Source: Bugula neritina (lineage: Eukaryota > Animalia > Bryozoa). From it: DNA of 64,000 nucleotides. Positions 27,516 through 55,919 of the stretch are shown piece by piece. The notes under the pieces are model-generated. The model was not told where the DNA came from, made no database searches, and was given only the letters and a program-made list of their open reading frames with translations. Every line of letters starts with the position of its first letter. The stretch's first letter is position 1. A program made the position numbers and the translations under genes. The stretch spans positions 2,822,741 to 2,886,740 of the forward strand of contig OZ037768.1 in the NCBI GenBank assembly GCA_964035545.1. The letters are read 5' to 3'.

Positions 27516-29001
27516 TCTACAGGTATTATAGTGCTCTATTTGCAAATGTTTTCCTAATGGTCTGATCATAAAATATAAACCCAAATATTCACGTTACAAT
27601 CACTATTATGTACTTTTTCATTAATATATTAGCACGGCTCTATATTTACAATTATGACTTGAGTAAGAAATGAGTAAGACTTGAACTTTTATTAAGTTTA
27701 GTTATAAGATGTGCTAAGGCTTCAAGTCCCACTATTTACTCTTATTGTACTCAAGTGTGACATTCAACTCAAAACAACATTTCTACTAACTGAAGGCTAT
27801 ATATTTATGATTCAATAAATATATATTTCAGATATTTAATAGAACTGAATTTAATAACCAAATTCCTTGAGTTACCTTTAAAGTCTATATATATTCTACT
27901 CTCTGCGTTATAGATGCGGAGTTAACTTAGCCTGAGTATCTACTAGTGAATCTACTAGTGATTTGTATGGGGCGTGCTTCTCTCCTGTCAATCTGTAAGA
28001 TCTCAAGAGAACTGACTTAATACTGATAACACTACTATACAGTATACTGTGTAACTATTTCATATTATATAATGCTACACCTTGTGAACATACCCTTGAA
28101 ATATGATTCTTATAGTTAATATCTACTAGTTGTGACTTTATTTCTATAAACTGAGTATATTTTGGTATCAATCAGTATAATGTACATTCTACAGAACTAT
28201 CTATACTTTATATATAACTATGTGTTGAGTTTATCTTCATACTTGTACGCATTATTGCACCATCAACTTGCAATGTCATTGAGTTGTGTATTTCTTGCAC
28301 AATATTTAATGGCAATATAATATATTGTTGTTTATTTATCATCTTGTTTTTTTATAGTAAAATATGCTGCTAACTTATTTGTTTATTACATATTTTATAA
28401 ATAAACAACATAGTATGTCCTATCCTGAAGAAGGAAGAGCTGGTATGGTTGTGTGTGCAACACGATATTATATAATATATACTCATAGCTAAATCTTCTT
28501 TCACCATGTGTTACAATAGCAATCACTTTTCTCTCTATAACAAGTGCCAGTAAATACTAAAGACACACTCTGTATTAACTAACAGTATAGCCCATACTAC
28601 AATACAGTACTTCCAACAGTAGATATAATGTATGTATTTCTAAGCTCTCAGTAATAAACACTAAAATATAATGTTTTGAGTAACCACTTTTTAGAAAGCA
28701 GAAATATTTTATATTGCAATAGAACATAATCATTATAGTAAACATAATAATAGTTAGTTTAAGAATGCTGTAAAAGCATCACTATTTGAAAGCTGCTCGA
28801 CTGCTTATTTCTTGCATCTTTCCATTTGAGTAGATATTCTGGTCTTGCTTCAGTAAAAGTCTTTCTAGTAATAATAAGATAGAGAAGAGTAAATAACAAT
28901 TTTCAACGAAAAAAGCTCAATTATGGTTTAACTGGAATCATCTACGAGTATTATTTGCAGTTTCTAAGCAGATTTCAATTATATTTTCATAGAAGATGTT
29001 T

Positions 29002-29340
29002 GACAATAATGATGTTATAGAAATCACAAACAGCTTTCTAAATATAAAAGAAGCATGTTGCCAATTTCTATAGAACCATAAAGTCTTATTAGGCATACTG
29101 TGCTTCAGCTTGTTTCTCTATCTTGTAGCTTCCTTCAACAAGCTGTGTGTGTGGTCCTAGTATCTGTGTGATGGTGTGGGTGGTCCTAGACTAGATGCGT
29201 GCTTTTGTGTGGCCCAGGACAGTGTCAGGAGTAATGTACTGGTAGCCATGTGCTCTCCTCATAAATAATGACTAGAACAGAATAGCTGGGTTGCAATAAC
29301 CAATAGAAAGTGGCTATTTCAATGCTGAAAGGGATTATTT
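29002..29340 (-). ncRNA. Older, inverted single-hairpin copy of the candidate miRNA unit with its promoter
   Basis: Minus strand reads gactttatggttctatagaaattggcaacatgcttcttttatatttagaaagctgtttgtgatttctataacatcattattgtc (29002-29085), preceded by CA-rich spacers and the conserved gccactttctattggtt promoter motif (~29297-29315). Confidence 0.5.
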
Positions 29341-32300
29341 TAGCGGTTTTTCTTTCCCAGAGACAGTTTCAAGCATCAGGAGGGCTACCATTAACTACCC
29401 AACCTACTTTTCTTTTGTTAAGCGAATTAAAATTTCCTCTGCATTCGACTATCAAGCCTTAAGCCTGTTAAGATCCTAAAGGCTACTAAATTAAAGACCT
29501 TAGAGCTTTGCTAAAACCAGATAGCCTGAAATAAAAGCTATTACCAATTGGGAAAAATTGCTTTTGTGCCAAATAAGAGCATTTGCTGCAACGTCAAATT
29601 TTAGTTGCTTAAATATATTTACATAGAACCTTCAGATAACTGGAGCTGGAGTACAGGTCACAACATGACGGTTTATTTTGTTATGCAAAATTAGGCTACC
29701 ACTTAAAAGAAGCACTTCTTTAAAGTACTGTGCATCTAATTTCTTCAGCTGACTTTCCCAGGAAGCTCAGCTAACAAATCCCATCATACTGGCGATTAGA
29801 ATTTCATTTGATTATATAACTTCTATTTGAATGTTTATGTTGAAGTTAAAGTGTTTATTTGAGCCTACTTTTACCACCGATAAGTTAGTTAGAGAAATGC
29901 ACCAAATTTTTATGTTAGCTTTCATTAAGGTTGTTTATTGTTCAGACTCCCTCTATTTAACTGCAATACACCATTCTACAGCTATTTGAAAGTTTTGGCG
30001 GCCTCTACTAGCTAGGTTGATGCTTAGCTTGGAAGGTGGAGTTAACCATATCAACAGGGCAATATTTCTAAAAGTGGCTAAAGTTGCAGGCATCTTTTTC
30101 TGTTAAAGATTGTAATCAAGCTTTCAAGCAAAACTTGGCTGTTGCAGCTTATTAAAAAAATTGAAAACTCTAGAAACTTATTCATCTTCTTATAGTTTTA
30201 TATTGTAATGTAGTAAATAGTCAGTGAAAACTCAATATTGTAATAGTTCAAACCTCTCTAATTGTAAGAAGTCTACGCATAAAACCAAAGTATAATATAT
30301 ATATATGGAAAAGATAATAATATATTACTAGCTATATTGAAACAAAATCAGCTTTTAGGACTGACTTGGCGTATGCTTTCCAGTACACCGTACACATTCT
30401 AGTCTACATTCTACACCATATAGTCTACATTCTACACATTATATAGTTTAAACTATACACATTCTACTCTAAACTCTACATATTATAGTCTAAACTCTAC
30501 ACATTCTAGTTTTCATTTTACATATAACCTTCCCTCTACAGTTTTCAGCTCACACTACATAATCTTCACTTTAAAGTCTTTATTTCACATTCTGCAGTTG
30601 ATTAAAAACCAGGCTGATTCAAATCAAAGTAGCCATAAACTCATTAGACGTTATGAGATCATCTACTCAGTCTGAGTCAGCATGGAGTCACATGCTGACT
30701 GCTATATGTGGCAGGCAGAGTAAATATAATTATGCATTATTATGTGCTACTTTTTGAGGTCTAAAACCAATATTATATATACTAATTTCTTACAGTAAAA
30801 ACTTATTATCTGTCCAACAGCAGAATTCGAAACTCTGCAGGCTTGAATTAGGAGAGGCAGGGTGACTAACCCAACCCTCAAATTGGGAATATTTTTGGTG
30901 AACAATCATAGTAAAGTAATAAAATGTTTGTATTATGGAAAAAAAACATAAAGTCTTAAGAATATTAAAATTAATATGCAGGCATTAAATATAGCTAGCT
31001 CTATTTTGTATAAATTATTTAAACCTGAATTTATTAAATTGTATTTTATCCATAGATATATTTTAACAGACCTAGTATAGTTTCTAAATTACAAAATTTA
31101 AAGGAGGGTAAAATATGCTTCAATTACAGCCTACAGCACAATCATTATAAAGGTTCCTAGAGGTGCACTAAAGACAATCCTGAGAAAATCCAGGTCTTTT
31201 TAGCATCTTAGTGCTAATATTTTAGACCACTCTGTTATTATATAAACAAGAATGGTGGGTTCCTGGAAAAGTCAACAAAAAGCTTTCTGGGCTGCATAAT
31301 AGCCAGTTAAATTACCATTGCTTTAGTATTAACATGTAATTTGCTATCATTATAATTTCAGTAATCCCTTTAGGTGCCTTTCCATTCTAACAGTTTCAGA
31401 ATAATTATTGTTTACTGCCAATTTCTACCAGAAGGAAACAGCAGCTCAGAAAACATTTGCTGGCTGTCTTTTGCTAAAATAGTTAATAGTTCATCCTTCT
31501 ATTTTGCTTTATTCAAGTTTCATTAAGTTTCTTATATTATTAAACAACTTTCTTTTTCGGAAATCTCACTTTCGTTGAAATGTTACTTATTGTACAAAGA
31601 AATATAAAATTCAGTTTAGATTTTAGAAAGCTGACTTGGCTAAAAGATTAGAATGCTGTTAAAGTAAAAAAATAGGTTTCATCCCAGATAGACCCTTCCC
31701 AAATATGTGCTATTTTTGTATTTTGGTGCAATATATATAGTAATATACTTATACGTATCTAATAGCTGCTATATTGATTGCTAAACATGACATAAAAAAA
31801 TGGATGTGTGAGACGAAATATAACAGTAATACATTAATAATAGACATTCACATTATCTTTAATAAATACTTATTAATTAAATGTTTTTTAAGCAACAAGA
31901 AGTATAGAAAATACAAAATAAATAAGTTAACGCATATCAAAAGAAAATTGCTAATGGCTTCTTTGCTTCTTATTATGTGCTAAATAACAAACAATTAATA
32001 CAAATTTATTTAAATATACATATATTTCAATAATATTTAAACAAATTGCACATAAAATACATATATTGTACCAAAATAAATACATAACATCTAACTGGGA
32101 AGCATCTATTTGGAATGACACTAAAAAGTATTAATAAATAGAGCATCATAATAATATGCTCTCACTTTAAAGTCAGAGATGGGTACTTCAATGATTGAGC
32201 ACTTCAACATTGCCACGAATTCAAGCAAAGGTTTTAAAGTCTAGACTTTAAAGTTATCTCAAGTACCCTGGCTAATTTATAATACTTAGTATTATAACTA

Positions 32301-32479
32301 TCAGCCCAAATACTTGCAAATTCATTTGAAAACTTTTATTAAGATTTTTATAATATTTATATTCTACCAAAAAATTATATTTGGTACTTCAGTCTACAAC
32401 AGCTTCAGCAGTACATCAATTTATTGTTGCATGGTAAACATAGCCATTATATTTTTCTGTTCTAGAACTTTCTTTCTGT

Positions 32480-32593
32480 GGGAAATGTCCCTCCCCTTCA
32501 GCATCCGAATGGCCACTTTCTATTGGTTCTTGCCCATGTCTCTTTGTTCTGGGTTACTATATAAGAGAAGTACATCGGCCTCTTCCAGCAGTT
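32480..32593 (+). promoter_or_regulatory. Pol II core promoter for hairpin array 1
   Basis: kappaB-like GGGAAATGTCCC at 32480, reverse CCAAT (ATTGG) at ~32522, TATATAAG at 32558, Inr-like GCAGTT with A at 32590 (32 nt from TATA). Confidence 0.55.
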
Positions 32594-32719
32594 GACCACA
32601 CATCACCACACAACGAGGGACCACACACCACTACTGCACACAGAGACTTGGACCACACACACAGATTGCTGAAAGAAACTGCAAGATGAAAATAGGAAAG
32701 CACACTGACTCAGCCAACA

Positions 32720-33660
32720 ATGCTCGATGGTGCTATAGAAATCATAAATATAAGCTTCTCTAATATTTAGAAAGCTGTTTGTGTTTTCTATAACACCATT
32801 ATTGTTAAACATCTTCTCTAACAGCATTGGGATGTCCATTTACAACACACCATCACAAAGTCTGAGGACACACACCATCACACCATCAAAGACCATACAC
32901 AGCACTTGGGAAAAAAAACTAGAAAGAGCAAGACATTATGGTTCTATAGAAATCATAAAACATGCTTCTTTTATATGTTGAAAGCTGTTTGTGTTTTCTA
33001 TAACATCATAACTGTCAAACATGGAAACTAGAAAATGCAAGACTTGATGGTGCTATAGATATCATAAACATAAGCTTCTTTTATATTTAGAAAGCTGTTT
33101 GTGTTTTCTATAGCACCATTATCGTCAAACATCTTCTCTAACAGCATTGAGATAGCTAATTACAGCACACCACCACAGAAGGTCTGGGGCCACACACCAT
33201 CACACCATCAAAGACCATACACAGCACTTGGGAAAAAAAACTAGAAAGAGCAAGACATTATGGTTCTATAGAAATCATAAAACATGCTTCTTTTATTTGT
33301 TGAAAGCTGTTTGTGTTTTCTATAACACCATACTTGTCAAACATGATCAATAAAATTCAGAAGAGAAAGGAATCTAGGCATTTAATTATAAACATGGCCA
33401 TTTACTATTGTTTACCTTTATTGTCACCCAACTATTTGTTTTGATGCTCTTCTCAAAATATTATTTTCTTTATTCTGAAGCTGACCACACACCATCACAG
33501 AAAGTCTGGGGCCACACACCATCACACAGAAACTTAGACCACACACAGGTTGGGGGAGAATGCTGGAAAGGGCAAGACTTTATTGGTTCTATAGATATCA
33601 TACAAGTGTTTCTTTTATATTTAGAAAACCTTTTGTGATATCTATAACATCATTACTGTC
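32720..33660 (+). ncRNA. Candidate pri-miRNA cluster 1 (5 hairpins)
   Basis: Hairpins ~32720-32806, 32932-33016, 33041-33126, 33254-33338 and 33576-33660, with long stems, separated by CA-rich spacers; no ORF conserved between copies. Confidence 0.6.
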
Positions 33661-33898
33661 AAACATCTTCTAAGCAAGTAAATATAAATCTTCATGGGAG
33701 AGATGCCAGAAGGTTTCAACACAATCCAAAGAGATGGCAACATTTGGGGAAGCAGCATTTCTAAATAATAATTTAAAGTTGTACTACTAGCAGTTTGGGC
33801 TTTCCTATTAGGGATCATTGTTAATATAAAAAAAGGGATCTATTAAATTTATAAATATGCATCCTTTTGTAAAATTACAATTTTATTTTTGATAATAG

Positions 33899-34206
33899 TG
33901 TGGTGGCTCGTGGAGCTACCAGCAGCACAATACGCAGGGTTGCTTAATTGACCCGGAACAATAGACAGCCAATTAGCGGCTTTCATAGTTAGTAGCAGTA
34001 GTTAGTTTTCAGCTGTTAGTCAGTCGAAGTTAGGGTGCTGAATAATCTAGATGTGTAGAATTATTGAATGCATTTGTATAGTTTTTGTAATGTGTTCTTG
34101 TGCCTAAAATATATACTCGTTCACTCGACTTATCCTGGTGAAGTTCCCTAGCAAGTAAATAGACTCTCTGGATTGCATATCAACCCTAATTCTGAAAATC
34201 ATAACA
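33899..34206. mobile_element. Solo-LTR-like insertion (308 bp) unique to unit 1
   Basis: TG...CA ends (TGTGGTG...CATAACA), near-TSD ATAG/ATAC; absent at the paralogous sites (~39575, ~44945). Confidence 0.65.
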
Positions 34207-34596
34207 ATACTTTATGATAATAAATTTATTTATGTTTTTGCTTATTTAACATTTACATATTAACTTTAAATAACAGCATAAGCAGTGCAAATATATGAAA
34301 TAAATTTTAAAACCAAAATGTGAAACAATCTTTTACACAAAAATTATACATGATAGCAAACTTATAGATATAATGCATAGACATGAAAAAATTCTAGAAA
34401 GATACAGGTTTATTATTTAAACTATGAAGATGTATAACTTGGTGAAATCAACCATTAACAAAATGTTTAAAAGCTGCATTACTGATGAATTTAAATGGGT
34501 GCACATAAATTTTAGGTTTTGTTTATTGACTTTAATAAGAATGAGCTGTAACATCAAGCGTTGTCTTTCCCCCTATGCAAATGGCAGCTAACTCAC

Positions 34597-35191
34597 TCTC
34601 CACAAGAGCGAGCCTGGTACTCATCATCAGTACCAGGTGGTGTGAATGTACTCAGCATCTCTGTTCTATCAGAATTGTCCACCCCTGCTATTAAAAAGCC
34701 CCTGTAGCCCTCTTTTTTCTTCTTATGCATTTCAATGGTTACTAAAGAATAAATAAATAACAGAATATAGTGAGTTTTCTAGAACAGTATCATAGCTAGC
34801 TGAGCACTGTTTGCAATGAAATATATACCCCAGAATTTGCATTTTAAATTTTTGCTATACCTACCAAATATAAATTGTTTGTCCTCTTTTTAAAAAATTG
34901 TGATGCATTATTTAAAAAAGCTTACCTAATTATACAAGAGTAACATGAATTTTTGAAGACAAACCAGTTTTATTTTATCAGTAAATGCTCACCAGTTATA
35001 GTGCTGTTTGTTATTTCACAGGTGGAGGTAATTTTATAAGAAGGGGTTGTAGACTGGGGTTCTACATTATGGAGAGGTTGAAGAAAGTTTGGCCCTGCGA
35101 AACAGACTATCTGAGGAGCACCAGTGCTTAGAGACTCAGCTAAGGTGGCAATACCAACCAGTAGTATCAGGGGAGTGAGTGGGTGGTTCAT
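34597..35191 (-). pseudogene. Reeler-domain gene copy 1, truncated
   Basis: Exon 1 (34993-35191) and exon 2 (34597-34741) present; the ~640 bp carrying exons 3-4 in the paralogues is deleted at ~34388. Confidence 0.8.
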
Positions 35192-35835
35192 GATTCTCAG
35201 TTACTATCTCCCTGTAAATACAACATGCATCTACCTGTAAGTGCAATGTGTATCAAATAATTATATTTATTATGAAGATAAACACCTGTGCACATAATAA
35301 TAACAAATGCTAGTATTATAATAGGAAGTTGTTAGTTTGATAATTTGTTATACATAGTTATAATACATTAGTTTTTTTTAAAATGTAATGTATCAATGTA
35401 TACTGAAACGATTTCAGTTAATAATGAATTTAGAAAACAACTTGTAACTTTATAGCAGCATTAAAACCTATTATTGATAATAAAGTTCTAAAATATTATG
35501 CAGATATTTTTGGAAGATTGAGAATAAAATCTTTTTTGTGAGTTGAGTTGAGAGCAAACTTTTCATCATTTTGGATGTTGTTGACTCAACTTAATAAACT
35601 GTATAACTTTCTGAGTCCTTTAGTGCTTTGTAAATTTACTAGAATCTAATTAGCCTACCAACTTCAACCTATAATTATCAGCTTACTAGTTCATAGTATG
35701 GTATGGCTACTTAGAAAACTGCACCTAAATTTATAATTCCAATAATTAAACTGCAGAGTCTACACATTCTATTCTAAACTCTACACATTATGGTCTATAA
35801 CTCTACACATTCTAGTTTTCATTTCACATATAACC

Positions 35836-36247
35836 TGTAGCGTTTTGATCATTTTTTTTATTGTAGTACTCACTACTGCATACCATTCACCCTTACATTC
35901 ACTAGCTACTCACATAGCCACAGCTTTTTCTTAAACCACAAATAGCTTTGTTTTCATTATTGCAATGCAATGATTTTGCTAACAGAATAGCTGTCAGCTT
36001 TTTATAGCTTGTAGCAAAGTTATAATAGCTAAGGTGTTTTATGCCTTCATTTCTCTACTGACTGTTGCAGTTCTAACTAGTCATTCTTTATTTGATTAAA
36101 CTTTCACCGTCACAATTTTATATACTTAATTCTAACTCTCCCCAGGAAGGGTAATAGAGTTTCACGTTGGTTACCAGTTAGTTAAATAAATATCAACAAA
36201 ACACCAGCAGTGCAACCTGTTATCAATAAACTGGGGTAGACGTTACA
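35836..36247 (-). mobile_element. Solo LTR (412 bp, 5-bp TSD)
   Basis: TGTAGCG...CGTTACA termini, TSD TAACC (35831-35 / 36248-52); empty site in the other units (~30525, ~41823); minus-strand TATAAA ~36001-36006 and AATAAA ~35857-35862. Confidence 0.8.
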
Positions 36248-38177
36248 TAACCTTCCCTCTACAGTTTTCAGCTCACACTACATAACCTTCACTTTAAAAT
36301 CTCTATTTCACGTTCTACAGTTGATTAAAGTCCAGGCAGATCCAAATCAAAAATAGCCATAAATACATCAGATGATATGAGATCCTCTACTCAGTCTCTG
36401 TCAGCATGGAGTCACATGCTGACTGTTATATGTAGCAGAGAGGTTAAATATGCAGTATTTAATACAATTCTTTGAGTTTCAAAACTAGTGTTATATATAT
36501 ATACTAATTTCTTACAGTGAGAACTTGTAATCTGTCCAACAGTAGAAATTGCAACTCTGTAGGTTTGATTTAGGAAAGGGAGGGTGACTAACCCAACCCT
36601 TGAGTTTGGAATATTTTTACTAAACAATCATTAAAGTAATAAAATGTTTGTATTCTAGAAAAAAAAGCCTAAAGTCTTAAAAGTATTGAAGTTAGTATGC
36701 AGGCATTAACCATAAATTTATATTGTAAAAATTATTTAAACCTGAATTCATTAAATTTTATTTTATTTATAGATATATTTTAACAGACCTAGTATAGTTT
36801 CCAAGTTACAAAATTCAAATGGAAGTAAAATATGCTTCAATTACAGCCTACAGCACAATCATTATAAAGGTTTATAGAGGTGCACGAAAGACAATCCTGA
36901 GAAAATCCAGGTCATTTTAGCATCTTAGTGCTAACATTTTAGACCACTCTGTTATTACGTAAAGGTTTATAGAGGGCTTTCTGGGCTGCATAATAGCCAG
37001 TTAAATTACCATTGCTTGGGTATTAACATGTAATTTGCTATCATTATAATTTCAGTAATCCCTTTAGGTGTCTTTCCATTCTAGCAGTTTCAGAATAATT
37101 ATTGTTTACCATCAACTTCTACCGGAAGCAAACAAAAGGTCAGAAAACCTTGGCTGGCTGTCTTCTGCTAAAATAGTTAATAATTCATTCTTCTATTTTG
37201 CTTTATTTAAGTTTTTTTAAGTTTCTTATATTATTAAACAACTTTCCAGAAATCTCACTTTCTTTGAAATGTTACGTATTGTACAAAGAAATATGAAACT
37301 CAGTTTAGATTTTAGAAAGCTGACTTGGCTAAAAGATTAGAATGCTGCTAGAATAAAAAAATATGTTTCATCCCAGATAGACCCTTCCCAGTTATGCGAT
37401 ATTTTTGTATTTTGGTGTAATATATATAGTAATATATCTACATATATGTATATAATAGCTGTTGTATTTATTGTTAAATTTGAAATAGTGGAAAATATGG
37501 ATGTGTGGGACAAAATAAAACAGTAATACATTATTAATAAACATTCACATTGTCTTTAATAAATACTTAATAATGAAATATTTTCTTAAGCAACAAGAAG
37601 TATAGAAAATACAAAATAAGTCAATTAATGCATGTCAAAAAAAATTGCTAATAGCTTCTTTGCTTCTTACTATGTGCTAAACAACAAACAATTGATACAA
37701 ATTTATTTAAATATACATATATTTCAATAATATTTAAACAAATTGCACATGAAATACATATATTGTACCAAAATTATTAAATATTATCTAACTGGGAGGC
37801 ATCTATCTGGAATGACACCAAAAAGTATTAATAAATAGAGCATCATAATAATATGCTCTCACTTTAAAGTCAGAGATGGGTACTTCAGGGATTGAGCTCT
37901 TCAACATTGCCAGGAATTCAAGCAAAGGTTTTAAAGTCTAGACTTTAAAGTTATCTCAAGTACCCTGGCTAAATTTACATACTTAGTATTATAACTATCA
38001 GCCCAAATGCTTGCAAATTCATTTGAAAACTTTTATTAAGATTTTTACAACATTTATATTCTACCAAATAATTATATTTGGTACTTCAGTCTAAAACAGC
38101 TTCAGCAGTACATCAATTTATTATTGCATGGTAAATATAGCCATTGTATTTTTCTCTTCTAGAACTTTCTTTCTGTG

Positions 38178-38290
38178 GTAAATGTCCCTCCCCTTCAGCA
38201 TCCGAATGGCCACTTTCTATTGGTTCTTGCCCCTGTCTCTTTGTTCTGGGTTACTATATAAGAGAAGTACATTGGCCTTTTCCAGCAGTT
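38178..38290 (+). promoter_or_regulatory. Pol II core promoter for hairpin array 2
   Basis: ATTGG at ~38219, TATATAAG at 38255, GCAGTT with A at 38287; kappaB-like site mutated (GGTAAATGTCCC). Confidence 0.5.
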
Positions 38291-38409
38291 GACCACACAC
38301 CATCACACAGACTGGGACCACATCATCATGAAGAGACTTGGACCACACACACAGATTGCTGAAAGAAACTGCAAGATGGAAGTAGGAAAGCACACTGACT
38401 CAGCCAACA

Positions 38410-39333
38410 ATGCTTGATGGTGCTATAGACATCATAAACATAGCTTCTTTTATATTTAGAAAGCTGTTTGTGTTTTCTATAACACCATTATTGTTACACA
38501 TCTTCTCTACTAGCATTGGGATGGCCATTTACAACACACCACCAGAGTCATCACACAGCTTAGGAAAGGAATCTGGAAAGGCAAGACTTTATGGTTCTAT
38601 AGAAATCATAAAATTGCTTCTCTCATATTTAGAAAGCTGTTTGTGTTTTCTATAACATCATAACTGTCAAACATGGAAACTAGAAAAGGCAAGACTTGAT
38701 GGTTGTAATAGAAATCATAACTGTGCTTCTTTTATATTCAGAAAGCCACTTGTGTTTTCTATAACACCATTAATTTTAAACATCTTCTCTAACAGCATTG
38801 AGATGGCCATTTACAGCACACCACCACAGAAAGCCTGGGGCCACACACTATCACACCGTCTAAGACCACACATAAGACTTGGGAAAGAAAACTAGAAAGA
38901 GCAAGACATTATGGTTCTATAGAAATCATAAAACATGCTTCTTTTATATGTAGAAAGCTGTTTGTGTTTTCTATAACACTATAATTGTCAAGTATCATCT
39001 ATAAAATTCAAAGAACAAAGAATCTAGACATATAATTATAACAGCATAAAAATAGCCATTTACTATTGTTGAACTTTATTTGTTTTGATGCTCTTCTTAA
39101 AATAATATTATTATTTTGAGAAGAGATTCAGATATTACTTTCTTTATTCTAAAGCTGACCACACACAATCACAGAGAGTCTGGGGCCACACACCACCACA
39201 CAGAAACTTAGACCACACACAGTTTGGGGGAGAATGCTAGAAAGGGCAAAACTTTATGGTTCTATAGATATCATACAAGTGTTTCTTTTATATTTAGAAA
39301 ACCTTTTGTGATTTCTATAACATCATTACTGCC
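38410..39333 (+). ncRNA. Candidate pri-miRNA cluster 2 (5 hairpins)
   Basis: Hairpins ~38410-38495, 38585-38668, 38693-38775, 38905-38989 and 39250-39333. Confidence 0.6.
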
Positions 39334-39967
39334 AATCATCTTCTAAGCAAGTAAATATAAATCTTCATAGAAGAACTGCCAGAAGATTTCAACACAATCC
39401 GAAGAGATAGCAACATTTGGAGAAGCAGCATTTCTAAAAAAAATATATATAGTTTAAAGTTATACTACTAGCAGTTTGGGCTTTCATATTTAATATTATT
39501 GTTGATAAATAAGAGAAATTTATTAAATTTATAAACATGCATATTTCTGTAAGATTGTAATTTTATTGTTGATATTCATAGTAAATTAATTTATGTTTCA
39601 TATCAACTCTATGTAACAACATAAGCAGTGCAAATATGAAATAAATTTTAAAATCAAAATGTGAAACAATCTTCTACACAAAAATCATACATGATAACAA
39701 ACTTATAGATATAATATATAGACATGAACAAGTATATCTAATATAAAACTAATTGTGTCATGTAAAACAGTCTGATACAATAACTCACTCCGTGGTAAAC
39801 CTAGCTTTGTTACATAAATTATAGAAGTAGTTGAATTACTAAAAAAAATTTCTTTTTTTATTATTTCTTCAAAACTTGACAATATATTACATGATAACTT
39901 ATGTCTAACTTTTTTGCTCCTAAATTTAGTTGCTAAGGCATATCTTGCTGCATTTTGAAACATTTCT

Positions 39968-41176
39968 TCAGCTGGATAATTTGTTTGGTATCTCACAGCA
40001 GGGTACTACATCCATGTTCCACCATTTGTCTTTTCTTTTCACTATCACAGTTCTAAAATTTGAAAAAAAAACAACAATCCTGCAAAAATCTGAAAGCTAA
40101 GTTGTATGAGTCAGATATTAAATAGCCGTACCTGAAACACACTTTCTTTCCAACTGCTTCCCTTGGAACTATCCAGTTTAGACTTAAATCATATTTTTTC
40201 TTTGAGTTATTTATGTGGGTGGCATAATCAGCCCTGCAACAAGCCAATAATTATTATAAAACTGTGCAATAAAATTTATTTGTATTGCATTACATAAATA
40301 CTTCTCAATACATTTAATGAAGTATTAAGTAAGAATAGGTTTTTCTACAGCAGTATACATGCACAAAGCAAAATTTTAAAAAGATACAGTTTATTATTTA
40401 GACTATGAAAATGTGTAATTTGGTAAAATCAACAATAAAAATCTTTTTAGAAACTACATTAATGATGAATCTAAATGAGTAAATTTCAGGTTTCATGTAT
40501 TTATAAAAAATTGATTTTAATAAGAATGAGCTGTAACATCAAGAGTTGTCTTTCCCCCTATGCAAATGGCAGCTAACTCACCCTCCACAAGAGCGAACCT
40601 GGTACTCATCATCAGTACCAGGTAGTGAATGTACCCAGCATCTCTGCTCTATCAGAATTGTCCACCCTTGCTATTAACAAGCCCCTGTAGCCTTCTTTTT
40701 TCTTTTTATGCATTTCAATGGTCACTAAAAAATAAATAAATAACAGAATATAGTGAGTTTTCTAGAACAGTATCATAGCTAGCTGAGCACTGTTAGCACT
40801 GAAATATATACCACAGAATTTGCATTTTAAATTTTTGCTATACCTACCAAATATAACTTTGTTGTCCTCTTTTTAAAAAATAGTGATGCATTATTTAGAA
40901 GAGCTGACCTAATTATACAAGAGTAACATGAATTTTTGAAGACAGTCAGTTTTATTTTATCAGTAAACGCTCACCAGTTATGGTGTTTTTTGTGATTTCA
41001 CAGGTGGAGGTAATTTTATAAGAAGGGTTTGTAGACTGGGGTTCTACATTATGGAGAAGTTGAAGAAAGTTTGGCCCTGAGAAACAGACTATCTGAGGAG
41101 CACCAGTGCTTAGAGACTCTGCTAAGGTGGCAATACCAACCAGTAGTATCAGGGGAGTGAGGAGTTGATTCATCAT
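39968..41176 (-). pseudogene. Reeler-domain gene copy 2, frameshifted
   Basis: All four exons present, but exon 2 has ggtagtgaatg where copies 1 and 3 have ggtggtgtgaatg (2-nt loss at ~40624), giving ...GTFTTWY* (TGA at 40612-14). Confidence 0.8.
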
Positions 41177-43734
41177 TCTCAATCACTATCTACCTGTAAG
41201 TACAACATGCATCTACCTGTCAGTGCAATGTTTATAAAATAATTATATTTATTATAAAGATAAACACCTGTGCACATAATAATAAACACTAGTATTATAA
41301 CAGGAAGTTGTTAGTTTTATAATTTGTTATAGTTTTAATACATTAGCTCTTTTTAAAAATGTAGTGTATGTATGTATTCTGAAAATTTTTAGTTAATAAT
41401 GAATTTAGAAAGCAAATTGTAGCTTTATAGCAGCATTGAAACCTATTATTGATAATAAAGTTCTAAAATATTATGCAGATATTTTTGGAAGATGGAGAAT
41501 AAAATCTTTTTTGTAAGTTGAGTTAGTAGCAAAATTTTAATCATTTTGGTTGTTGTTGACTCGACTTAATAAACTGTATAATTTTCTGAGTCCTTTAGTG
41601 CTTTATAAATTTACTAGAATCTAATTACCAACTTCAACATATAATTATCAGCTTATTGGTTCATAGTATGGTATGGCTACTTAGAAAACTGCACCTAAAG
41701 TTATAAGTCAAATAATTAAACTGCAGAGTCTACACATTCTACTCTAAACTCTACACATTATATAGTCTAAGCTATACACATTCTACTCTAAACTCTACAC
41801 ATTATAGTTTTCATTTTGCACATAACCTTCACTCTATAGTTTTCATCTCACTTTACATAATCTTCAATTTAAAGTCTCTATTTCACGTTCTACAGTTGAT
41901 CAAACTCCAGGCAGATCCAAATCAAAAATAGCCATAAACTCATTAGACGATATGAGATCATCTACTCAGTCTGAGTCAGCATGGAGTCACATGCTGACTG
42001 TAATATGCAGTATTTAGTACGATTCTTTGAGTTTCAAAACTAGTGTTGTATATATACTAATTTCTTACAGTGAGAACTTATAATCTGTCCAACAGCAGAA
42101 TTAGCAACTCTGTAGGCTTGATTTAGGAAAGGGAGGGTGACTAACCCAACCCTTGAGTTTGGAATATTTTTGCTAAACAATCATTAAAGTAATAAAATTT
42201 TTGTATTCTAGAAAAAAGCCTAAAGTTTTAAAAGTATTGAAATTAATATGCAGACGTTAAACATATATTTATATTGTAAAAATTATTTAAACCTGAATTT
42301 ATTCAATTTTATTTTATTCATAGATATATTTTAACAGACCTATAGTATAGTTTCTGATTTACAAAATTCAAAGGAAAGTAACATATGCACGAAAGACAAT
42401 CCTGAGAAAATCAGGTCATTTTAGCATCTTGGTGCTAACATTTTAGACCACTCTGTTATTATATAAACAAGAATGGCAGGTTCCTAGGAAAAGTCAACAA
42501 GAAGCTTTCTGGGCTGCATAATAGCCAGTTAAATTACCATTGCTTGGGTAATAACATGTAATTTGCTATCATTATAATTTCAGTAATCCCTTTAGGTGCC
42601 TTTCCATTCTAACAGTTTCAGAGCAATTATTGTTTAATGGCAACTTTTACTGAAAGCAAACGACAGGTCAGAAAACCTTGCCTGGCTGTCTTTTGCTAAA
42701 ATAGTTAATAATTCATCCTTCTATTTTGCTTTATTTAAGTTTCTTCAAGTTTCTTATATTATCAAACAACTTTCTAGAAATCTCACTTTCTTTGAAATGT
42801 TACTTATTGTACAAAGAAATATTATGATGCTCAGTTTAGATTTTAGAAAGCTGACTTGGCTAAAAGATTAGAATGTTGTTAGAGTAAAAAAATAGGTTTT
42901 ATCCCAGATAGACCCTTCCCAGTTATGCGATATTTTTGTATTTTGGTGCAATATATATAGTAATATATCTACATATATGTATATAATAGCTGTTGTATTA
43001 ATTGTTAAATTTGAAATAGTAGAAAATATGGATGTGTAGGACAAAATAAAACAGTAATGCATTATTAATAAACATTCACATTGTCTTTAACAAATACTTA
43101 ATAATGAAATATTTTCTTAAGCAACAAGAAGTATAGAAAATACAAAACAAGTCAGTTAATGCATGTCAAAAAAAATTGTTAATAGCTTCTTTGCTTCTTA
43201 TTATGTGCTAAACAACAAACAATTAATACAAATTTATTTAAATATACATATATTTCAATAATATTTAAATAAATTGCACATAAAATACATATATTGCACA
43301 AAAATGAATAAATAACATCTAACTGGGAAGCATCTATCTGGAATGACACTAAAAAGTATTAATAAATAAAGCATCATAATAATATGCTCTCACTTTAAAG
43401 TCAGAGATGGGTACTTCAGCAAATAAGCACTTCAATACAAATTCAAGCAAAGGTTTTAAAGTCTAGATTTGAAAGTTATCTCAAGTACTCTGGCTAAATT
43501 TACATACTTAGTATTATATCATATATCTAATTATAATCATCAGCCCATCTAGTGCTTGCAAATTCATTTGAAAACTTTTATTAAGATTTTTATAATATTT
43601 ATATTCTACCAAATAATTATACTTGCTACTTCAGTCTAAAACAGCTTCAGCAGTACATAGATTAGAAACACCGTTCTATTGTTGCATGGTAAGTATAGCC
43701 ATGATATTTTTCTGTTCTAGAACTTTCTTTCCGT

Positions 43735-43848
43735 GGGAAATGTCCCTCCTCTTCAGCATCGGAATGGCCACTTTCTATTGGTTCTTGCCCCTGTCTCTTT
43801 GTTCTGGGTTACTATATAAGAGAAGTGCATTGACCTTTTCCAGCAGTT
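43735..43848 (+). promoter_or_regulatory. Pol II core promoter for hairpin array 3
   Basis: GGGAAATGTCCC at 43735, ATTGG at ~43777, TATATAAG at 43813, GCAGTT with A at 43845. Confidence 0.55.
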
Positions 43849-43968
43849 GACCACACACCGTCACACAGCCTGGCACCACACCATCATGAAGAGACTTGGA
43901 CCACACACACAGATTGTTGAAAGAAACTGCAAGATGGAAATAGGAAAGCACACTGACTCAGCCAACAA

Positions 43969-44734
43969 AGCTTGATGGTGCTATAGAAATCATAAATATG
44001 AGCTTCTTTTGTATTTAGAAAGCTGTTTGTGTTTTCTATAACATCATAACTGTCACTGTCAAACATGGAAACTAGAAAGGGCAAGACTTGATGGTTGTAA
44101 TAGAAATCATAAATGTGCTTCTTTTATATTCAGAAAGCCACTTGTGTTTTCTATAACACCTTTATTGTCAAACACCTTCTCTAAAACTAAGTCTAATCTC
44201 TAACAGCATTGAGATGGCCATTTACAGCACACCATCACACAGTCTAAGGCAACACACAGGGCTTGGGAAAGAACTAGAAAGAGCAAGACATTATGGTTCT
44301 ATAGAAATCATAAAACATAAGCTTTTTTTATATGTAGAAAGCTGTTTGTGTTTTCTATAACAACCATAATTGTCAAGCATCATCTATAAATTTCAAAGAA
44401 CAAAGAAATCTAGACATATAATTATAACAGCATAAGAATGGCCATGGATTTACTATTGTTGAACTATATTGTGACCCGGCTATTTGTTTTGATGCTTTTT
44501 TCAAAATAATATATTATTTTGAGAAGAGAATCAGAATATTTTCTTTATTCTTAAGCTGACCACACACCATCACAGAAAGTCTTGGGCCACACACCATCAC
44601 ACAGAAACTTAGACCACACACAGTTTGGAGGAGAATGCTAGAAGGGGCAAGACTTTATGGTTCTATAGATATCATACAAGTGTTTCTTTTATATTCAGAA
44701 AACCTTTTGTGATTTCTATAACATCATTACTGTC
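43969..44734 (+). ncRNA. Candidate pri-miRNA cluster 3 (4 hairpins)
   Basis: Hairpins ~43969-44054, 44085-44169, 44287-44374 and 44651-44734. Confidence 0.6.
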
Positions 44735-45354
44735 ATTCATCTTCTGAGTAAATAAAGATAAATCTTCATGGGAGAGATGCCAGAAGATTTCAAAGAAATG
44801 GCAACATTTGGGGAAGCAGCATTTTTAAATAATAATTTAAAGTTGTACTACTAGCAGTTTGGGCTTTCATTGTTAATAATAAAAGGGATCTATTAAATTT
44901 ATAAACATGCATATTTCGGTTAAATTGCAATTTTATTGTTGATATTCATAGTAAATTTATTTGTTTCATATCAACTTTATATAGCAACATAAGCAGTGCA
45001 AATAAATTTTAAAACCAAATTGTGAAACAATCTTTTACACAAAAATTCTACATGTTAACAGCTTATAGATATAATATATAGACATGAACAAGTATATCTA
45101 ATATAAAACTAATTGTGTCATGTAAAACAGTCTGATACAATAACTCACTCTGTGGTAAACTTAGCTTTGTTACATAAATTATAGAAAGTTGATTTATACT
45201 AATACAATTCTCTTTTAGTCAAAGTGATTCTAGCTGGTAAATTTTTCTTATTTCTTCAAAACTTGACAATATATTACATAATAACTTAGATCTAGCTTTA
45301 TTGCTAGTAAGATTAGTTGCTAAGGCATATTTTCCTCCATTTTGAAATATTTTT

Positions 45355-46542
45355 TCAGCTGGATATTTCGTTTGGTATCTCACAGCAGGGCACTACATCC
45401 ATGTTCCACCATTTGTCTTTTCTTTTCACTATCACAGTTCTGAAATTTGACAAAAATACATGACAACAAATCTGTAGAATTAGAAATTTTATGCTGTAGG
45501 AGAGAAATATTGAATAACTGTACCTGAAGCACACTTTCTTTCCAAATGCTTCCCTTGGGACTTTCCAGTTTAGACTCAAATCATATTTTTTCTTTGAGTT
45601 ATTTATGTGGGTGGCGTAATCAGCTCTGCAACAAGCCAATAATTATTATAAAACTGTGCAATAAAATTTATTTATATTGTATTACATAAATACTTCTCAA
45701 TACATTTAATGAAGTCTTTAGTAAGAACAGGTTTTTCTAAAGCAGTATACATGCACAAAGCAAAATTTTAAAAAGATACAGTTTATTATTTAGACTATGA
45801 AAATGTGTAATTTAGTGAAACCAACCATTAAAAAAATGTTTAAAAACTACATTAATGATGAATCTAAATGAATAAATTTTAGGTTTCACGTATTTATAAA
45901 AAATTGATTTTAATGATAATGAGCTGTAACATCAAGAGTTGTCTTTCCCCCTATGCGAATAGCAGCTAACTCACCCTCCACAAGAGCGAACTTGGTACTC
46001 ATCATCAGTACCAGGTGGTGTGAATGTACCCAGCATCTCTACTCTATCAGAATTGTCCACCCCTGCTATTAAAAAGCCCCTGTAGCCTTCTTTTTTCTTC
46101 TTATGCATTTCAATGGTCACTAAAGAATAAATAAACAACACAATATAGTAAGGATAATAATATCTTAGTTTGTTTAACATGTCTTGTATTGAAATTTATA
46201 CCCCCAAATTGTTTTTTCTATTCTTACCACCAATGCCTGTTCTACTAAAAGGTAACACTTTTACACTATATAGAAGAGCTTACCCGAGTAACATGAATTT
46301 TTGAAGACAAATCAGTTTTATTTTACCAGTAAACGCTCACCAGTTATGGTGTTGTTTGTGATTTCACAGGGGGAGGTAATTTTATAAGAAGGGTTTGTAG
46401 ACTGGGGATCTACATTATGGAGAGGTTGAAGAAAGTTTGGCCCTGCGAAACAGACTATCTGAGGAGCACCAGTGCTTAGAGACTCTGCTAAGGTGGCAAT
46501 ACCAACCAGTAGTATCAGGGAAGGTAGTGGGTGGTTCATCAT
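45355..46542 (-). CDS. Secreted single reeler-domain protein (putative defence protein-like), 177 aa, intact copy 3
   Basis: Exons 46341-46542, 45975-46119, 45524-45625 and 45355-45439 in phase. Signal peptide, then STGAP..C..P.H..PQ..PSY.I, YRGFLI, G.F, C, TH.N..K..L.W..P and V.F.TV..W, the reeler signature. Confidence 0.88.
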
Positions 46543-49500
46543 TCTCAGTTACTATCTACCTGTAAATACAACATGCATCTACCTGTAAGTGCAATGTGTA
46601 TAAAATAATTATATTTATTATAAAGATAAACACCTGTGCACACAATAATAAACACTAGTATTATAATAGGAAGTTGTTAGTTTTATAAGTTGTTATAGTT
46701 TTAATATATTAACTCTTTTTAAAAATGTAATGTATATATTACGCATGCTGACAAAATTTCAGTTAATAATGAATTCAGAAAACAAATTGTAACTTTATAG
46801 CACCATTGAAGTCTATTATTGATAATAAAGTTCTAAAATATTATGCAAATATTTTTGGAAGATGGAGAATAAAATCTTTTTTGTAAGTTGAGTTGGGAGC
46901 AAAATTTAAATCATTTTGACTGTTGTTGACTCAACTTAATAAACTATATAATTTTCTGAGTCCTTTAGTGCTTTGTAAATTTCCTAAAATCTAATTACCT
47001 ACTTCAACCTATAATTATTGGCTTACTAGTTCATAGTATGGTATGGCTACTTAGAAAACTGCACCTAAAGTTATAAGTCTAGTCATGAAGCTGTACAATT
47101 AACTTGTAAGCTGTGAGAAGCATTGGACTATAACTATAGTTTCAGTTCAGTGGTGAGAAGACTGAAGAATATTGCCCAGATTCCCAGAACAACTTTAATG
47201 TAAAAGCTACAGTAATATCAGCCTCTACTTACCATTTGCTATCACTGAAGGTGGTAGTGCTTATCTATGCAGTGTACTGTAACTATAGACTGAGTAGTCA
47301 GTTAATGCTGTGTCTTATACCTACATTATCCTCCATTAACTCAATCTGTGTCTTTATTGACCATAGAAATTTATATATTCATATAAAATGAAATGGGCTT
47401 TTTTCTAGTTCCTTTCAATACAACATATATAATAATTCACCTTATAATGAACATAAATTATTTGGACATCTGGTAGTGTTTTGAAAGGAAAGATATATGC
47501 TATGAACTGTGGGTGAAAGTTCTATATGCAACATTGTGCCAGGGAGATAATCTTGGCTGTTTGCCAATATTTCACTAAAGTAGCCGTTAGCTTTTTGCAG
47601 TTTGTTCAGCCATTTTTTTTGGCTTTTTGTTATTTGTTTGTTGACTGGTACGTGAATTTCTTTAGTTTGTATTATGATTGTGAGTAGTTTCACTTGTCAG
47701 GAACAGGTTCAAAGTAGCTGATGTTTGTAAGTGTTATTATAATTTTGAAGTTTTTTGTTTTTGTTGATATTATTGAAAAGTTACTTATGTAAATGTTTTT
47801 GTACAGCATGTAACTATTTTTGATATTTTGATAGAGTACAAGACAAAGAGTGGACAATAAATTCAAAGATTAAAATTATTGTTCCATGCTTGTTGCTATC
47901 CAACTCAATAAGCCATTCCTGGCACAAACATTATTAAATATATTATAATTTATGGAATTGATGTGACTTTTGGTTAGATTATAAATTGCAGTTGAGTAAA
48001 CTATAAATAACAATTGAAAGGTTACTTGGTAGTTGGTAACTATTTTTTGTTTATTTCTTAGTTAATCAATTGTGTATGAATATTAATTTCAAGAAGAATT
48101 ATTAAATTCCTTTTTTACATATTTTAGAAATACCAGTAGACAATTAAAATATTTAAAACATTTTTAACAGTTGAATATTCACTTATGTTACAGTTATAGC
48201 TTATTTATTGTTGGATTATTTTTATTAAAGGATAAACGGCTGCAGCTAAATTTATGATATGATAGGCTAGCAGAAAAGTTTAAGTAAGGAACAATTCTAC
48301 AACAACTGAGGTGTACTGAGGGCTGATGAGTTGACAAATTACAGCTTCAAATCTCATCAACTGTGAGTCAGATTGGCTTTATTGGGTTTAAGTACATCTG
48401 TTACAGCCATTAGTGCTTTCTAATATATACTTTCTATTTCCAATAAAAGTTTACATACTAAATTAATGTGTGTGACAGCTGGCAATATGTCACATGATGA
48501 AAGTGTGACACGAGAACATTCTAGCTTAACATGAGAACTAAGACTCAAGTATATTTGTTCCCAACTGAGTAAAATAATATCAGGATCTCTTGTTTATGGT
48601 GTCCGATGCCATTTTTACCTAAAATCCTTGTTTACATGTACTTTTATTAGGTTTTGTACATTAAAAAGTGATTGTCATTTTAGTGTTGAAACTGTAGTAG
48701 GTGTTGTGTACAAGTGTAGGACATAAAAAAGTGTCTGGGATGTAAGCCAAGTGGAAATCCAACAAATTAATACACTAAACACCAAGCTAGTTCAATATTA
48801 TAAACATCACTAGTATCACTATTATGTGCCATTAGTGCTTATCAATGGTTTAGTTATACAAATTAAATAATCCCTGTTACATTTATGCAGAATGGATTGA
48901 AATATTCCTCTACAGAGCATTCTAGGGTTGCATACCACAACACTTTTAGTTTATAATAAAATCTGCCGATAAAACTAGATAGTAAATAAAAACACCCGTT
49001 GATAAGAAGACATTTGGCAAATTTGACCAATTAATAAACTCCATAATCTAAATATTATTGCACTTGTATTATAAGATTGGAAGCTGGTTAGTATAGAACA
49101 CTAATATGTAGTCTTTCTCTATAAACTTCTAGACTTATTTACAGCCAGCAAACTTACTGCCTGCTTATTTTAAAGTTGTAATATGCTAACAGTTGAATAA
49201 TATAAAGTACAAATGTAATGCAATAGCTTGGGGTGTAATACATTATACATTATTGATGAAATGTGATTTTATGAATTCAACATAGCTTCGTATTCTTATC
49301 TAATTTACAAATGAAATGTTGTTAATAGGCTTTGGTTTGTCAGTTCCATTAAGTTATGATAAAAGTTATAACAGAAACATTCCTTGAATTCTTTCATTTT
49401 TATTCCACCATTACAATTTTTCTGTGTAGTTGATTTGGCTGTGGTATAAGTAGAACAACAATTTTTATTATATAGTATATACTCTCTTGCATTAGGTATT

Positions 49501-53454: not shown

Positions 53455-55919
53455 ATAGGCCAGTTAGCAAACATGGTTATGGCTGATCAAATAATAATTA
53501 GCTGTATAAACCAATTGTCGGCCTACGTAGCTGTCAATTGATTCTAATGAGTAAAATTGCAACATAATTGATAAGCTATGGTTACATAACTGGTAAAGGC
53601 AGCTAGCATAATTGAATGTATAAAATATAGGTGCCGAATGGTGAACTGCTAGTACAATTTAATCTCAATAATGATTTAATAAGTTTAGATCAAAAATGCA
53701 TTGTTCTATTTTAGGAACATTTTAGGCAACCATTATTGAAAGCAAAGATATAAACGCAATGCTAAACACTCAAGATAGTATTTTCTGTAGTACATAGACA
53801 CTTTGCTAAAAGCAGTAAATACATTTGGCAATAGATCAGTTAGCAAAGAAGCTGAATTGACAACATTGACCATATTGTAGGTTGAATTACAGGAATGTAG
53901 CTTACATCAGCATTTTATAGTAATTACTATACTCCTTATTATATTATCTGCATAGTTTCTAGGTGTTGGCGATTTTGTTGTTGTTATATTATTCTATTAC
54001 TCTATTATTGCATTTTGTGACATTTAATATCAATTTCATAATTATGCTGCATTCGTATGCTTTAACCCAGCATTTTTCTTTATACTTTTTTATCAACTAG
54101 CCCAAGGAAGCTCACATTTATATGGATACACACCCAGCAGAAGATGCATATTTGTAAAATTATATCAAACTTGAAAAGTAAAAGCTCCTATTAGTGCAGT
54201 TTGAAGGAAGCACTGTAAAGTTTATAAGCCTAAAGTTGAAGCATTACTTCCCTTTGCTTGTTTAATTGAAAGAAAAAAGCTAGATTATAACAGTTTCCAA
54301 GTAATAGCTGGTGGTCAGTTGGTGCAAGTAAAAACATTATCTTGCTATGAAAAAGCTCTGCTACAAGTTTGAAAGTTCCCTTTACGTTTTTAGAAAGAAT
54401 TTTTGATGGAATATCAACTTAAGATATATGACTAGAGTTGCCACGGAATCAGCGAAAGGATGACTCTAGGGTGTCATCTCAGAAAAACTGCTTTACAGTT
54501 AGAAGCTAAATTTTATTTTGGCACCATAATAATGTATATACCTATGGAACTGTTGTATTGATTGCTAAACAGCTCATATGCTAATAGCTATAATAGCTAA
54601 TATAAAGTATATATCTAAAATAATAGTCCGATTTCCAGGGAATTTTGTGAGGCAAAAAACAGCAATACATTATTTTTAATAAATACTTATTAATGAAATA
54701 TTTTTTCGCACAACTAGAAGTATAGAATATGCAAAATTAATAAGTTAATGCAGATTACAGGAATTTATTTATATGCTAGATAACAAACAATTGATCCAAG
54801 TTTATTTAAATATACATATATTTCAATAATATTTAAATAAATTGCACGTAAAATGCATATTGTACTAAAATAAATAAATAGCTTCCAACTGGGAAGTGCC
54901 CATGATGTGGGAAATTTGGCCTAGCGTCTCTCTGGGATGAAACCGATTCTAGAAGTTCAGCCATCAAATCTGAATCCACTTAATTGCTTTGGAGTTAGAA
55001 AGCACACAAACTGGAGATAATCACTTCGCTATAACATCATCAATATTGGCTAAGTCCAAGATGGCGTGTTATGAAACACCGATATTGCAAAAGAAATGAA
55101 ATTCTGGTAAGCTCTCGGTTTATGCATGTTAGTTAATTATCACTCAGATTGGGTCACTCACTTCTCAATGTTTGATTCTCACGGGTACAAATAGATAGTA
55201 AAGCTGATTAAAGGAGTTGAGGAAACAATATATTGTAATCACGCTGATGAAATGCTGCATTTGGTTAACAAACCAGGAATATATGTTTATATATGTTTTA
55301 TTGATTCTGTTTTAACATTGTAGAAAAAGCCATCTTATATCAGTGTGCAGATATAAAATGCATACTAAACCCCCAGTGGCAAAGAAAAATAAATTCACAT
55401 AGTTATTAATTAAAAGCTTGCAGTCAAACAAATTTAGGACACAATTCAAGGTGTTGCAATCTAAATTGTTATATTTACAAGAAAATCAATGTAGCTGAGA
55501 ATATTATTACATGTACAGATATGGTATAAAATTAACACCTTGTGGTGCATTAATATTGAATTTTAGACAAAGTACCATGTATTAAATTCAAATTACATTC
55601 CATAAATAATATGCTGTGGGAATGTAAACTAAGTTACATATCTATGCTAACCAGAGTACAGCACACTGCACACAACCTTATAAACTTGTTAGCCTCATAT
55701 TAGATGTACTTACAACATTTATACCGTTGTTTCACGGCTAAACTAGAATTCACTATAAGTGCTATTAAAGAGTTTTTATCTGTCACAAACCCCCTAAAGG
55801 GACACAAAACATTTCTTTTGTCATGATTATAGAAATCCTGCTAACAACCAGTAGAGTCATTAAACATTACAAGCAGAAGTGAATGTAGTCTCTTCATCTA
55901 CCTCTAAATTATATAATAA

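Follow-up and report, generated by a model that had tools for sequence, protein, structure and literature searches.

What kind of element are the foldbacks that recur in three arrays within a tandemly repeated segment of the Bugula neritina contig OZ037768.1? A preliminary description of this DNA listed 14 of them on the plus strand and read them as an amplified microRNA family. The window analyzed here is a stretch of 64,000 nucleotides (nt) of this contig, and the genome-wide searches covered the 216-Mb assembly. The foldbacks form a family of hairpins that is confined to a single locus, that folds better on the sense strand, and in which both the 3′ arm and an adjacent promoter-like core have been under selection. 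These features point to four genes, putatively transcribed by RNA polymerase II (Pol II), that would encode a lineage-specific microRNA family with a functional 3′-arm (3p) product and three seed variants; the probability of this interpretation can be put at about 0.7.

A hairpin family confined to one locus

The arrays are located in a tandem triplication of a 5.4–6.0-kb unit on the plus strand, delineated with self-BLAST and a MAFFT alignment of the three units, which are 85–95% identical to each other. Except for one miniature inverted-repeat transposable element (MITE) of about 455 bp, the unit is unique in the genome. It contains no open reading frame (ORF) longer than 93 amino acids, and an exact look-up of six short ORFs that lie over the array finds none of them in a collection of transcript-derived contigs. 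All 14 foldbacks are recovered at the places given in the preliminary description, namely five in array A (32717–33666), five in array B (38407–39339) and four in array C (43965–44740). A looser search combined with a covariance model (CM) brings the family to 15 copies, with CM scores of 88 to 114 bits; the additional copy, M, lies on the minus strand (28996–29089), outside the range covered by that description, in a region about 76% identical to 32596–32817. The 23-nt core of the 3′ arm has 12 matches with up to three mismatches, vs. none in 100 shuffles. The types of the individual copies are listed in Table 1. Hairpin A3 is type-1-like after an internal duplication of 322 bp and has been overwritten with A1-like sequence, and the alignment of the units reveals C1 as a deletion product that fuses the 5′ half of hairpin 1 to the 3′ base of hairpin 2.

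Neither a BLAST search with the hairpin nor the covariance model identifies a copy elsewhere in the genome, so that all 15 copies lie within 16 kb. A pattern derived from 22 nt of the 3′ arm (up to three mismatches) occurs at 12 places outside the locus, all of which score at most 12.7 bits with the covariance model, and the motif of the CA-rich spacers between the hairpins is found in the genome only at this locus. A search of the window against Rfam 15 yields no hits at the gathering score. The best sub-threshold match is mir-1422, with 29.9 bits vs. a cut-off of 60; together with mir-556 and mir-633, this family resembles the hairpins only in the generic shape of a microRNA precursor (20–30 bits vs. 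gathering cut-offs of 60–90), and the hairpins are not members of any of the three. In metagenome contigs, the two-arm pattern has no hits; two contigs match a 20-mer from the 3′ arm, the covariance model detects no hairpin in either, and both are chance matches. Neither literature searches on microRNAs of Bugula or other bryozoans nor searches with the arm sequences reveal a description of this family. Two further identities were considered and rejected. An ACA trinucleotide located just past the stem is reminiscent of an H/ACA small nucleolar RNA (snoRNA), but the hairpins lack a pseudouridylation pocket and no Rfam family scores above the threshold; a miR-29-like seed in A3 is limited to this one copy, maps to the basal stem and is taken to be a coincidence.

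Each of the 15 copies, when folded alone, forms a single hairpin with approximately 33–38 stem positions and a loop that in most cases is 9–11 nt long. The minimum free energy (MFE) ranges from −21 to −38 kcal/mol (mean −26.4), and the z-scores, computed against dinucleotide shuffles, range from −3.3 to −8.5 (mean −5.1). In all 15 copies, the sense strand folds more stably than the antisense strand (mean −26.4 vs. −21.9 kcal/mol). Folding of complete arrays, each about 1 kb long, leaves 12 of the 14 hairpins as distinct local modules (every one of the ten in arrays A and B, two of four in array C), with pairing probabilities of 0.72–0.75 vs. 0.43–0.53 for the CA-rich spacers. MirGeneDB-type criteria call for at least 16 paired duplex positions, a loop of at least 8 nt, a precursor of about 55–65 nt, and reads of 20–26 nt that come from both arms and have homogeneous 5′ ends and 2-nt 3′ overhangs; the hairpins have 25–33 pairs per copy (32 in the model), loops of mostly 9–11 nt and a predicted pre-hairpin of about 58–62 nt. 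The optimal primary microRNA reportedly consists of a stem of about 35 bp that separates a single-stranded basal junction from the apical loop, a CNNC motif 16–18 nt past the 3p Drosha cut, a basal UG and an apical UGU or GUG. The first of these features is matched here by a stem of about 35 bp between the GAC/GUC base and the loop, with less paired flanks. In 11 of the 15 copies, CATC or CTTC forms a CNNC motif at +4 and/or +7 past the last pair of the basal stem, about 17 nt from a predicted cut 13 bp up the stem; the motif had been noticed 3′ of most stems and is lacking in A2, B2, A4 and C1.

Covariation was scored on a model-guided alignment of the 15 copies. Standard pairs account for 90.8% of the pair cells, compared with at most 50% when the partners are slid, and G:U cells number 35 vs. 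5 A·C cells. Five base pairs show two-sided compensatory changes: 10/88 (G:U to U-A); 26/73 (A-U to U-A, in A5 only, where a recent U-to-A change restores the pair); 36/64 (C-G to U-A, in B3 and C3); 37/63 (A-U to G-C, in B3 and C3 as well as in A5, B5 and C5); and 42/61 (C-G to U-A, in A5, B5 and C5). The alignment bears out the exchanges pointed out in the preliminary description, that is, the flip from CA/UG to UG/CA in B3 and C3, the A-U to G-C change accompanied by C-G to U-A in A5, B5 and C5, and the conversion of a C·A mismatch to C-G in A3. The bulged U that was said to be always kept is retained in types 2–4 and not in the other types.

Table 1. Positions of the hairpins, repeat units, promoter-like blocks and shared hexamers in the window (CM, covariance model; MFE, minimum free energy of the sense fold).
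Feature	Position	Strand	CM (bits)	MFE (kcal/mol)	z	Remarks
Hairpin M	28996–29089	−	91.7	−22.8	−3.9	Type 1; solitary, older, inverted; antisense MFE −17.4
Hairpin A1	32717–32812	+	95.3	−30.3	−7.2	Type 1
Hairpin A2	32928–33022	+	113.7	−26.0	−5.0	Type 2/4
Hairpin A3	33037–33132	+	101.1	−37.7	−8.5	Type-1-like
Hairpin A4	33250–33344	+	109.4	−27.4	−5.7	Type 2/4
Hairpin A5	33572–33666	+	93.5	−26.2	−6.0	Type 5, variant 3′ arm
Hairpin B1	38407–38501	+	99.1	−27.2	−4.1	Type 1
Hairpin B2	38581–38674	+	105.8	−24.1	−4.2	Type 2/4
Hairpin B3	38689–38783	+	89.5	−24.8	−4.7	Type 3 (two adjacent pairs flipped)
Hairpin B4	38901–38995	+	111.6	−27.4	−5.2	Type 2/4
Hairpin B5	39246–39339	+	90.4	−23.0	−5.0	Type 5
Hairpin C1	43965–44060	+	88.1	−24.1	−3.3	Fusion
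Hairpin C3	44081–44175	+	92.4	−23.3	−3.5	Type 3
Hairpin C4	44283–44380	+	102.3	−30.5	−6.5	Type 2/4
Hairpin C5	44647–44740	+	95.7	−21.3	−3.5	Type 5
Triplication unit A	30431–35814	+				Self-BLAST and MAFFT; 21-nt tandem repeats at borders
Triplication unit B	36245–41785	+				Self-BLAST and MAFFT
Triplication unit C	41820–47093	+				Self-BLAST and MAFFT
Promoter-like block, M	29258–29330	−				Inverted CCAAT box and TATA-like TATTTATG; aligned with the three array promoters
Promoter-like core, A	32496–32592	+				CTATTGGTT at 32520, TATATAAG at 32558, CAGT at about 32589–32592
Promoter-like core, B	38193–38289	+				Exact CCAAT...TATA pattern at 38217–38264
Promoter-like core, C	43751–43847	+				Exact CCAAT...TATA pattern at 43775–43822
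Shared ATTAAA, array A	33842–33847	+				First hexamer common to all units, about 180 nt past hairpin 5
Shared ATTAAA, array B	39522–39527	+				Downstream of the array
Shared ATTAAA, array C	44892–44897	+				Downstream of the array

Purifying selection on the 3′ arm and a conserved promoter-like core

Substitution events were counted in sets of positional orthologs and compared with a background of well-aligned non-hairpin columns (7.4–9.3% pairwise differences). In the 23-nt upper part of the 3′ arm, a single event is observed vs. 12.8 expected (ratio 0.08, P=3.8e-5), and this sole event is the compensatory change in A5. The remaining parts of the hairpin have evolved at the background rate since the triplication, with 11 events vs. 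13.6 expected in the upper 5′ arm, 10 vs. 6.1 in the loop, 5 vs. 7.4 in the 5′ basal stem and 8 vs. 7.4 in the 3′ basal stem. A comparison of units B and C alone gives the same picture, with no differences among 92 positions of the 3′ arm vs. 7.4% in the background (P=0.0017). Across all 15 copies, the pairwise diversity is 0.094 in the 3′ arm vs. 0.16–0.22 elsewhere in the hairpin, in agreement with the initial impression that this arm is the most conserved part, and eight copies share an identical arm even though their spacers differ by 20–25%. Purifying selection is acting on the sequence of approximately 23 nt in the 3′ arm rather than on the hairpin as a whole, a pattern that a mature small RNA predicts.

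The second conserved element of the locus is a block that consists of CTATTGGTT, an inverted CCAAT box, followed by TATATAAG 38 nt on and by CAGT about 31 nt past the start of the TATA box (32520–32592, 38217–38289 and 43775–43847). It lies 130–200 nt upstream of all three arrays, and also of copy M, and its orientation always matches that of the hairpins. In copy M, it is the best-conserved part outside the hairpin, and the 26-nt CCAAT block (29318–29293) matches the degenerate pattern with 0 mismatches; in the whole genome, this 26-nt block is found at four places only, all of them at this locus. The promoter-like core has accumulated 2 substitution events since the triplication vs. 9.8 expected (P=0.003), whereas the rates in the leader and in the more distal upstream DNA equal or exceed the background. 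The TATA box, its spacing from the initiator-like site and the upstream CCAAT box are kept in all four units, and the blocks are candidate Pol II promoters. Runs of four T residues, present in every hairpin, would argue against transcription by RNA polymerase III. Poly(A)-signal hexamers (AATAAA and ATTAAA) are depleted on the sense strand of the arrays, where they occur 1, 0 and 0 times vs. about 3 expected in each array, and they occur 5, 2 and 2 times on the antisense strand; the first sense hexamer common to all units lies downstream of the arrays (Table 1). Taken together, the locus would comprise four putative Pol II genes, each with a promoter, a CA-rich leader and one to five hairpins.

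Predicted processing, choice of the arm and alternative explanations

We infer transcription, processing and the exact register of the products, as well as any target, from the sequence of the locus. According to the model, Pol II would start about 30 nt past the TATA box, itself located downstream of the inverted CCAAT box, and would produce a single polycistronic primary transcript in which a weakly structured CA-rich leader precedes the hairpins. Drosha/DGCR8 would cut the stem of about 35 bp approximately 13 bp above the basal junction, aided in most copies by the CNNC motif 4–7 nt beyond the stem. From what is established on the Microprocessor, a cut at this distance from the GAC/GUC base of a 35-bp stem would leave a pre-hairpin of about 60 nt. 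Dicer would then take off the loop of 9–11 nt, and a product of about 22 nt from the 3′ arm, near AAGCUGUUUGUGUUUUCUAUAA (±2 nt), would be loaded into Argonaute. At the predicted positions 3–7 of this product, the 3′ arm exists in three variants, GCUGU, GCCAC and ACCUU, each with corresponding changes in its 5′-arm partner, so that three different seeds would be available from the family. That 3p is the functional arm is suggested by how little the 3′ arm has changed since the unit was triplicated.

Several observations weigh against this interpretation or restrict the evidence for it. Because the copies are paralogs, only about 5–6 independent covariation events can be counted, rather than 14; the covariation is real but modest. 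The excess of G:U cells is in part inherited from one ancestral U:G pair, and the counts of G:U cells as well as those of CNNC motifs are largely inherited among the paralogs. The basal UG and the apical UGU are absent from the 15 hairpins: the 5′ flank is GCAAGAC, with no UG at the junction, and the loops are rich in U and A, with UGU found only on the 3′ side and in some of the copies. These two motifs enhance processing and are not obligatory. The slow rate of change involves one arm only, and the whole hairpin is not significantly slower than the background (5.2% vs. 7.4%, P=0.16); furthermore, invariant runs of 40–49 nt also occur by chance elsewhere in the unit, and for these two reasons the evidence for selection on one arm comes from contrasting the arms in pooled data. 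Finally, the predicted 3p seed is located exactly where the hairpin types differ, and the predicted 5′-arm (5p) product begins with U and has an A/U-rich, mismatched and weakly paired 5′ end, an asymmetry in thermodynamic stability that would favor 5p. The predicted 5p seed is nearly invariant, with AUAGAAA in 10 copies. Given the variation of the 3p seed between the types and this asymmetry, the assignment of the product to the 3′ arm is tentative. A 5p product is allowed as well, and it may be that both arms are used or that the types have diverged in function. The fold, the strand bias, modest covariation and the lack of dispersed copies and of Rfam matches lend partial support, at the level of sequence, to the original reading as an amplified, lineage-specific microRNA family with a tentative 3p register.

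The properties described above could, in principle, also come from functional RNA structures that are not microRNA precursors, such as stem-loops that bind proteins in a repeated long non-coding RNA, or that are precursors of small RNAs of another class, with the 23-nt block being recognized or released. Nothing more than a transcribed RNA under sequence constraint is needed to explain the strand bias, the promoter-like block and the selection on a single arm, and the missing basal and apical motifs and the lack of Rfam hits at the gathering score are compatible with such an RNA. However, the length of the stem, the size of the loop, the lack of large internal loops, the clustering on the same strand and the placement of CNNC all match Microprocessor substrates; the boxes and the pocket of snoRNAs are missing, and neither a snoRNA family nor any other Rfam family scores above the threshold. 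In addition, bryozoans lack DICER2 (PMC11114477), and, on balance, an origin of this kind appears unlikely.

An explanation that invokes no functional RNA, in which a neutral tandem repeat with a monomer that is palindromic in DNA by chance has been carried along in the 5.5-kb triplication, is quite improbable. It accounts well for the identity of the entire unit, which shows that the similarity between the copies stems largely from recent duplication, and it could draw on the whole-hairpin divergence and on the invariant runs outside the hairpins discussed above. Yet the neutral decay of a palindrome predicts equal numbers of G:U and A·C cells and equal rates in the two arms, as opposed to the 35 vs. 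5 cells and the 1 vs. 11 events (upper 3′ and 5′ arms) that are observed. Neither the better sense fold of every copy, nor the identity of the 25-nt 3′ arm between old paralogs with diverged spacers, nor the conservation of the adjacent promoter core, the old inverted copy included, is expected under neutrality. A true MITE, about 455 bp long and with terminal inverted repeats of 64 nt, lies some 900 bp upstream in each unit and might suggest that the hairpins, too, represent copies of a palindromic MITE or of another transposon-derived foldback; this possibility is effectively refuted. The searches with BLAST, with the covariance model and with the 22-mer pattern agree that dispersed copies, which the preliminary description had named as a refutation of the microRNA reading, are absent from the genome; the hairpins show no structure of terminal inverted repeats and target-site duplications, their flanks are conserved spacers, and they have no sequence in common with the nearby MITE.

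Relation to known microRNA clusters and genomic surroundings

Multicopy clusters of tandemly amplified units are known from vertebrates, namely miR-430 in zebrafish and miR-427 in Xenopus, which are expressed in the embryo and clear maternal mRNA. The Bugula locus resembles them in the tandem units, in the presence of several same-strand hairpins of one family and in the variation between hairpin positions; unlike them, it includes only 15 hairpins in four units, and there is no similarity in sequence or seed. Other lineage-specific clusters are C19MC of primates, mir-35-41 of C. elegans and the mir-310 cluster of Drosophila. The likeness in this case consists in a young family at one locus, local duplication and a transposon-derived piece in the repeat unit, but each unit of the Bugula locus has its own CCAAT/TATA block, the hairpins are not located in the introns of one long host transcript, and there is no homology. 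A more far-reaching scenario, which we consider doubtful, is that of a promoter-bearing multicopy microRNA family specific to bugulid bryozoans that has acquired its three seeds through paired compensatory changes and has been amplified for high dosage like miR-430, e.g., for a burst of expression in the embryo or larva.

Under this last scenario, the family would rank among the first microRNA families to be described as specific to bryozoans. Should small RNAs confirm the locus, the result would be a bryozoan lineage-specific family with a clear gene model that includes promoter, leader, hairpins and poly(A) signal, and a compact natural example of how wobble intermediates allow new seeds to arise within a duplicated cluster without loss of the hairpin. 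The understanding of microRNA biogenesis would not change. Young tandemly amplified microRNA clusters are common in animals. As of 2022, Bryozoa were not among the lophotrochozoan groups covered by MirGeneDB, i.e., the phylum had no representative in that database (PMC11114477).

Bryozoans possess DICER1 and a microRNA-type Argonaute (PMC11114477), and components of the pathway are detectable in the present assembly. A plain pattern search identifies let-7 (G000:C2:4918550-4921570, locus position 1501–1521) with one mismatch to the canonical sequence and a good hairpin; the seed of mir-125 follows 140 nt downstream, so that the ancient linkage of let-7 and mir-125 is kept. No mir-100 seed is seen in this 3-kb locus. 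The Rfam models of mir-10, let-7 and mir-1 produce no matches above the cut-off in the genome, in a search that is insensitive inasmuch as it misses let-7. An exon encoding an RNase III domain (G000:C3:1379969-1383097, approximately 1498–1614, plus strand) has Drosha as its best relatives of known structure, with 63.8 bits vs. 35 for Dicer, and matches human Drosha with an E-value of about 3e-17; this locus is probably the Drosha gene. At two loci (G000:C5:7700266-7701159 and G000:C4:9168651-9168874), pairs of hairpins spaced 150–800 bp apart show sub-threshold matches to the Rfam model of mir-1 (39–43 bits). These pairs lack the mature mir-1 sequence and may represent further unannotated hairpin clusters.

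Within the triplication, each junction between units carries a tandem repeat of 21–22 nt in 3–6 copies (30391–30510, 35759–35816 and 41729–41803), which is the likely substrate for the unequal crossing-over behind the triplication. Downstream of the array, unit A (33894–34388) differs from units B (39574–40370) and C (44944–45762); the segment is shorter, with an apparent identity of about 50%, and is an insertion or replacement. The MITE (37365–37821 in unit B, with counterparts at about 31668–32124 and 42896–43352 and a partial copy at 54667–54896) has terminal inverted repeats that are 75% complementary and is present in at least 40 copies in the genome. The insertion into the unit predates the triplication, and the promoter-like block lies about 400 bp downstream of the element. 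Elsewhere in the window, tandem repeats with periods of about 30–150 bp and 83–96% identity are found at 5203–5624, 11796–12128 and 16077–16477, some of them within the longest ORFs. The arrays have as a neighbor a single-exon ORF (26067–26765, plus strand) that encodes a β-propeller protein of 232 amino acids (NHL/PQQ-like). Relatives of this protein include about 60 sequences in JGI/ENA metagenome contigs (37–90% identity) and two in the bryozoan Watersipora subatra, the sole named source, and the protein appears to belong to a family of small propeller proteins that has expanded in bryozoans.

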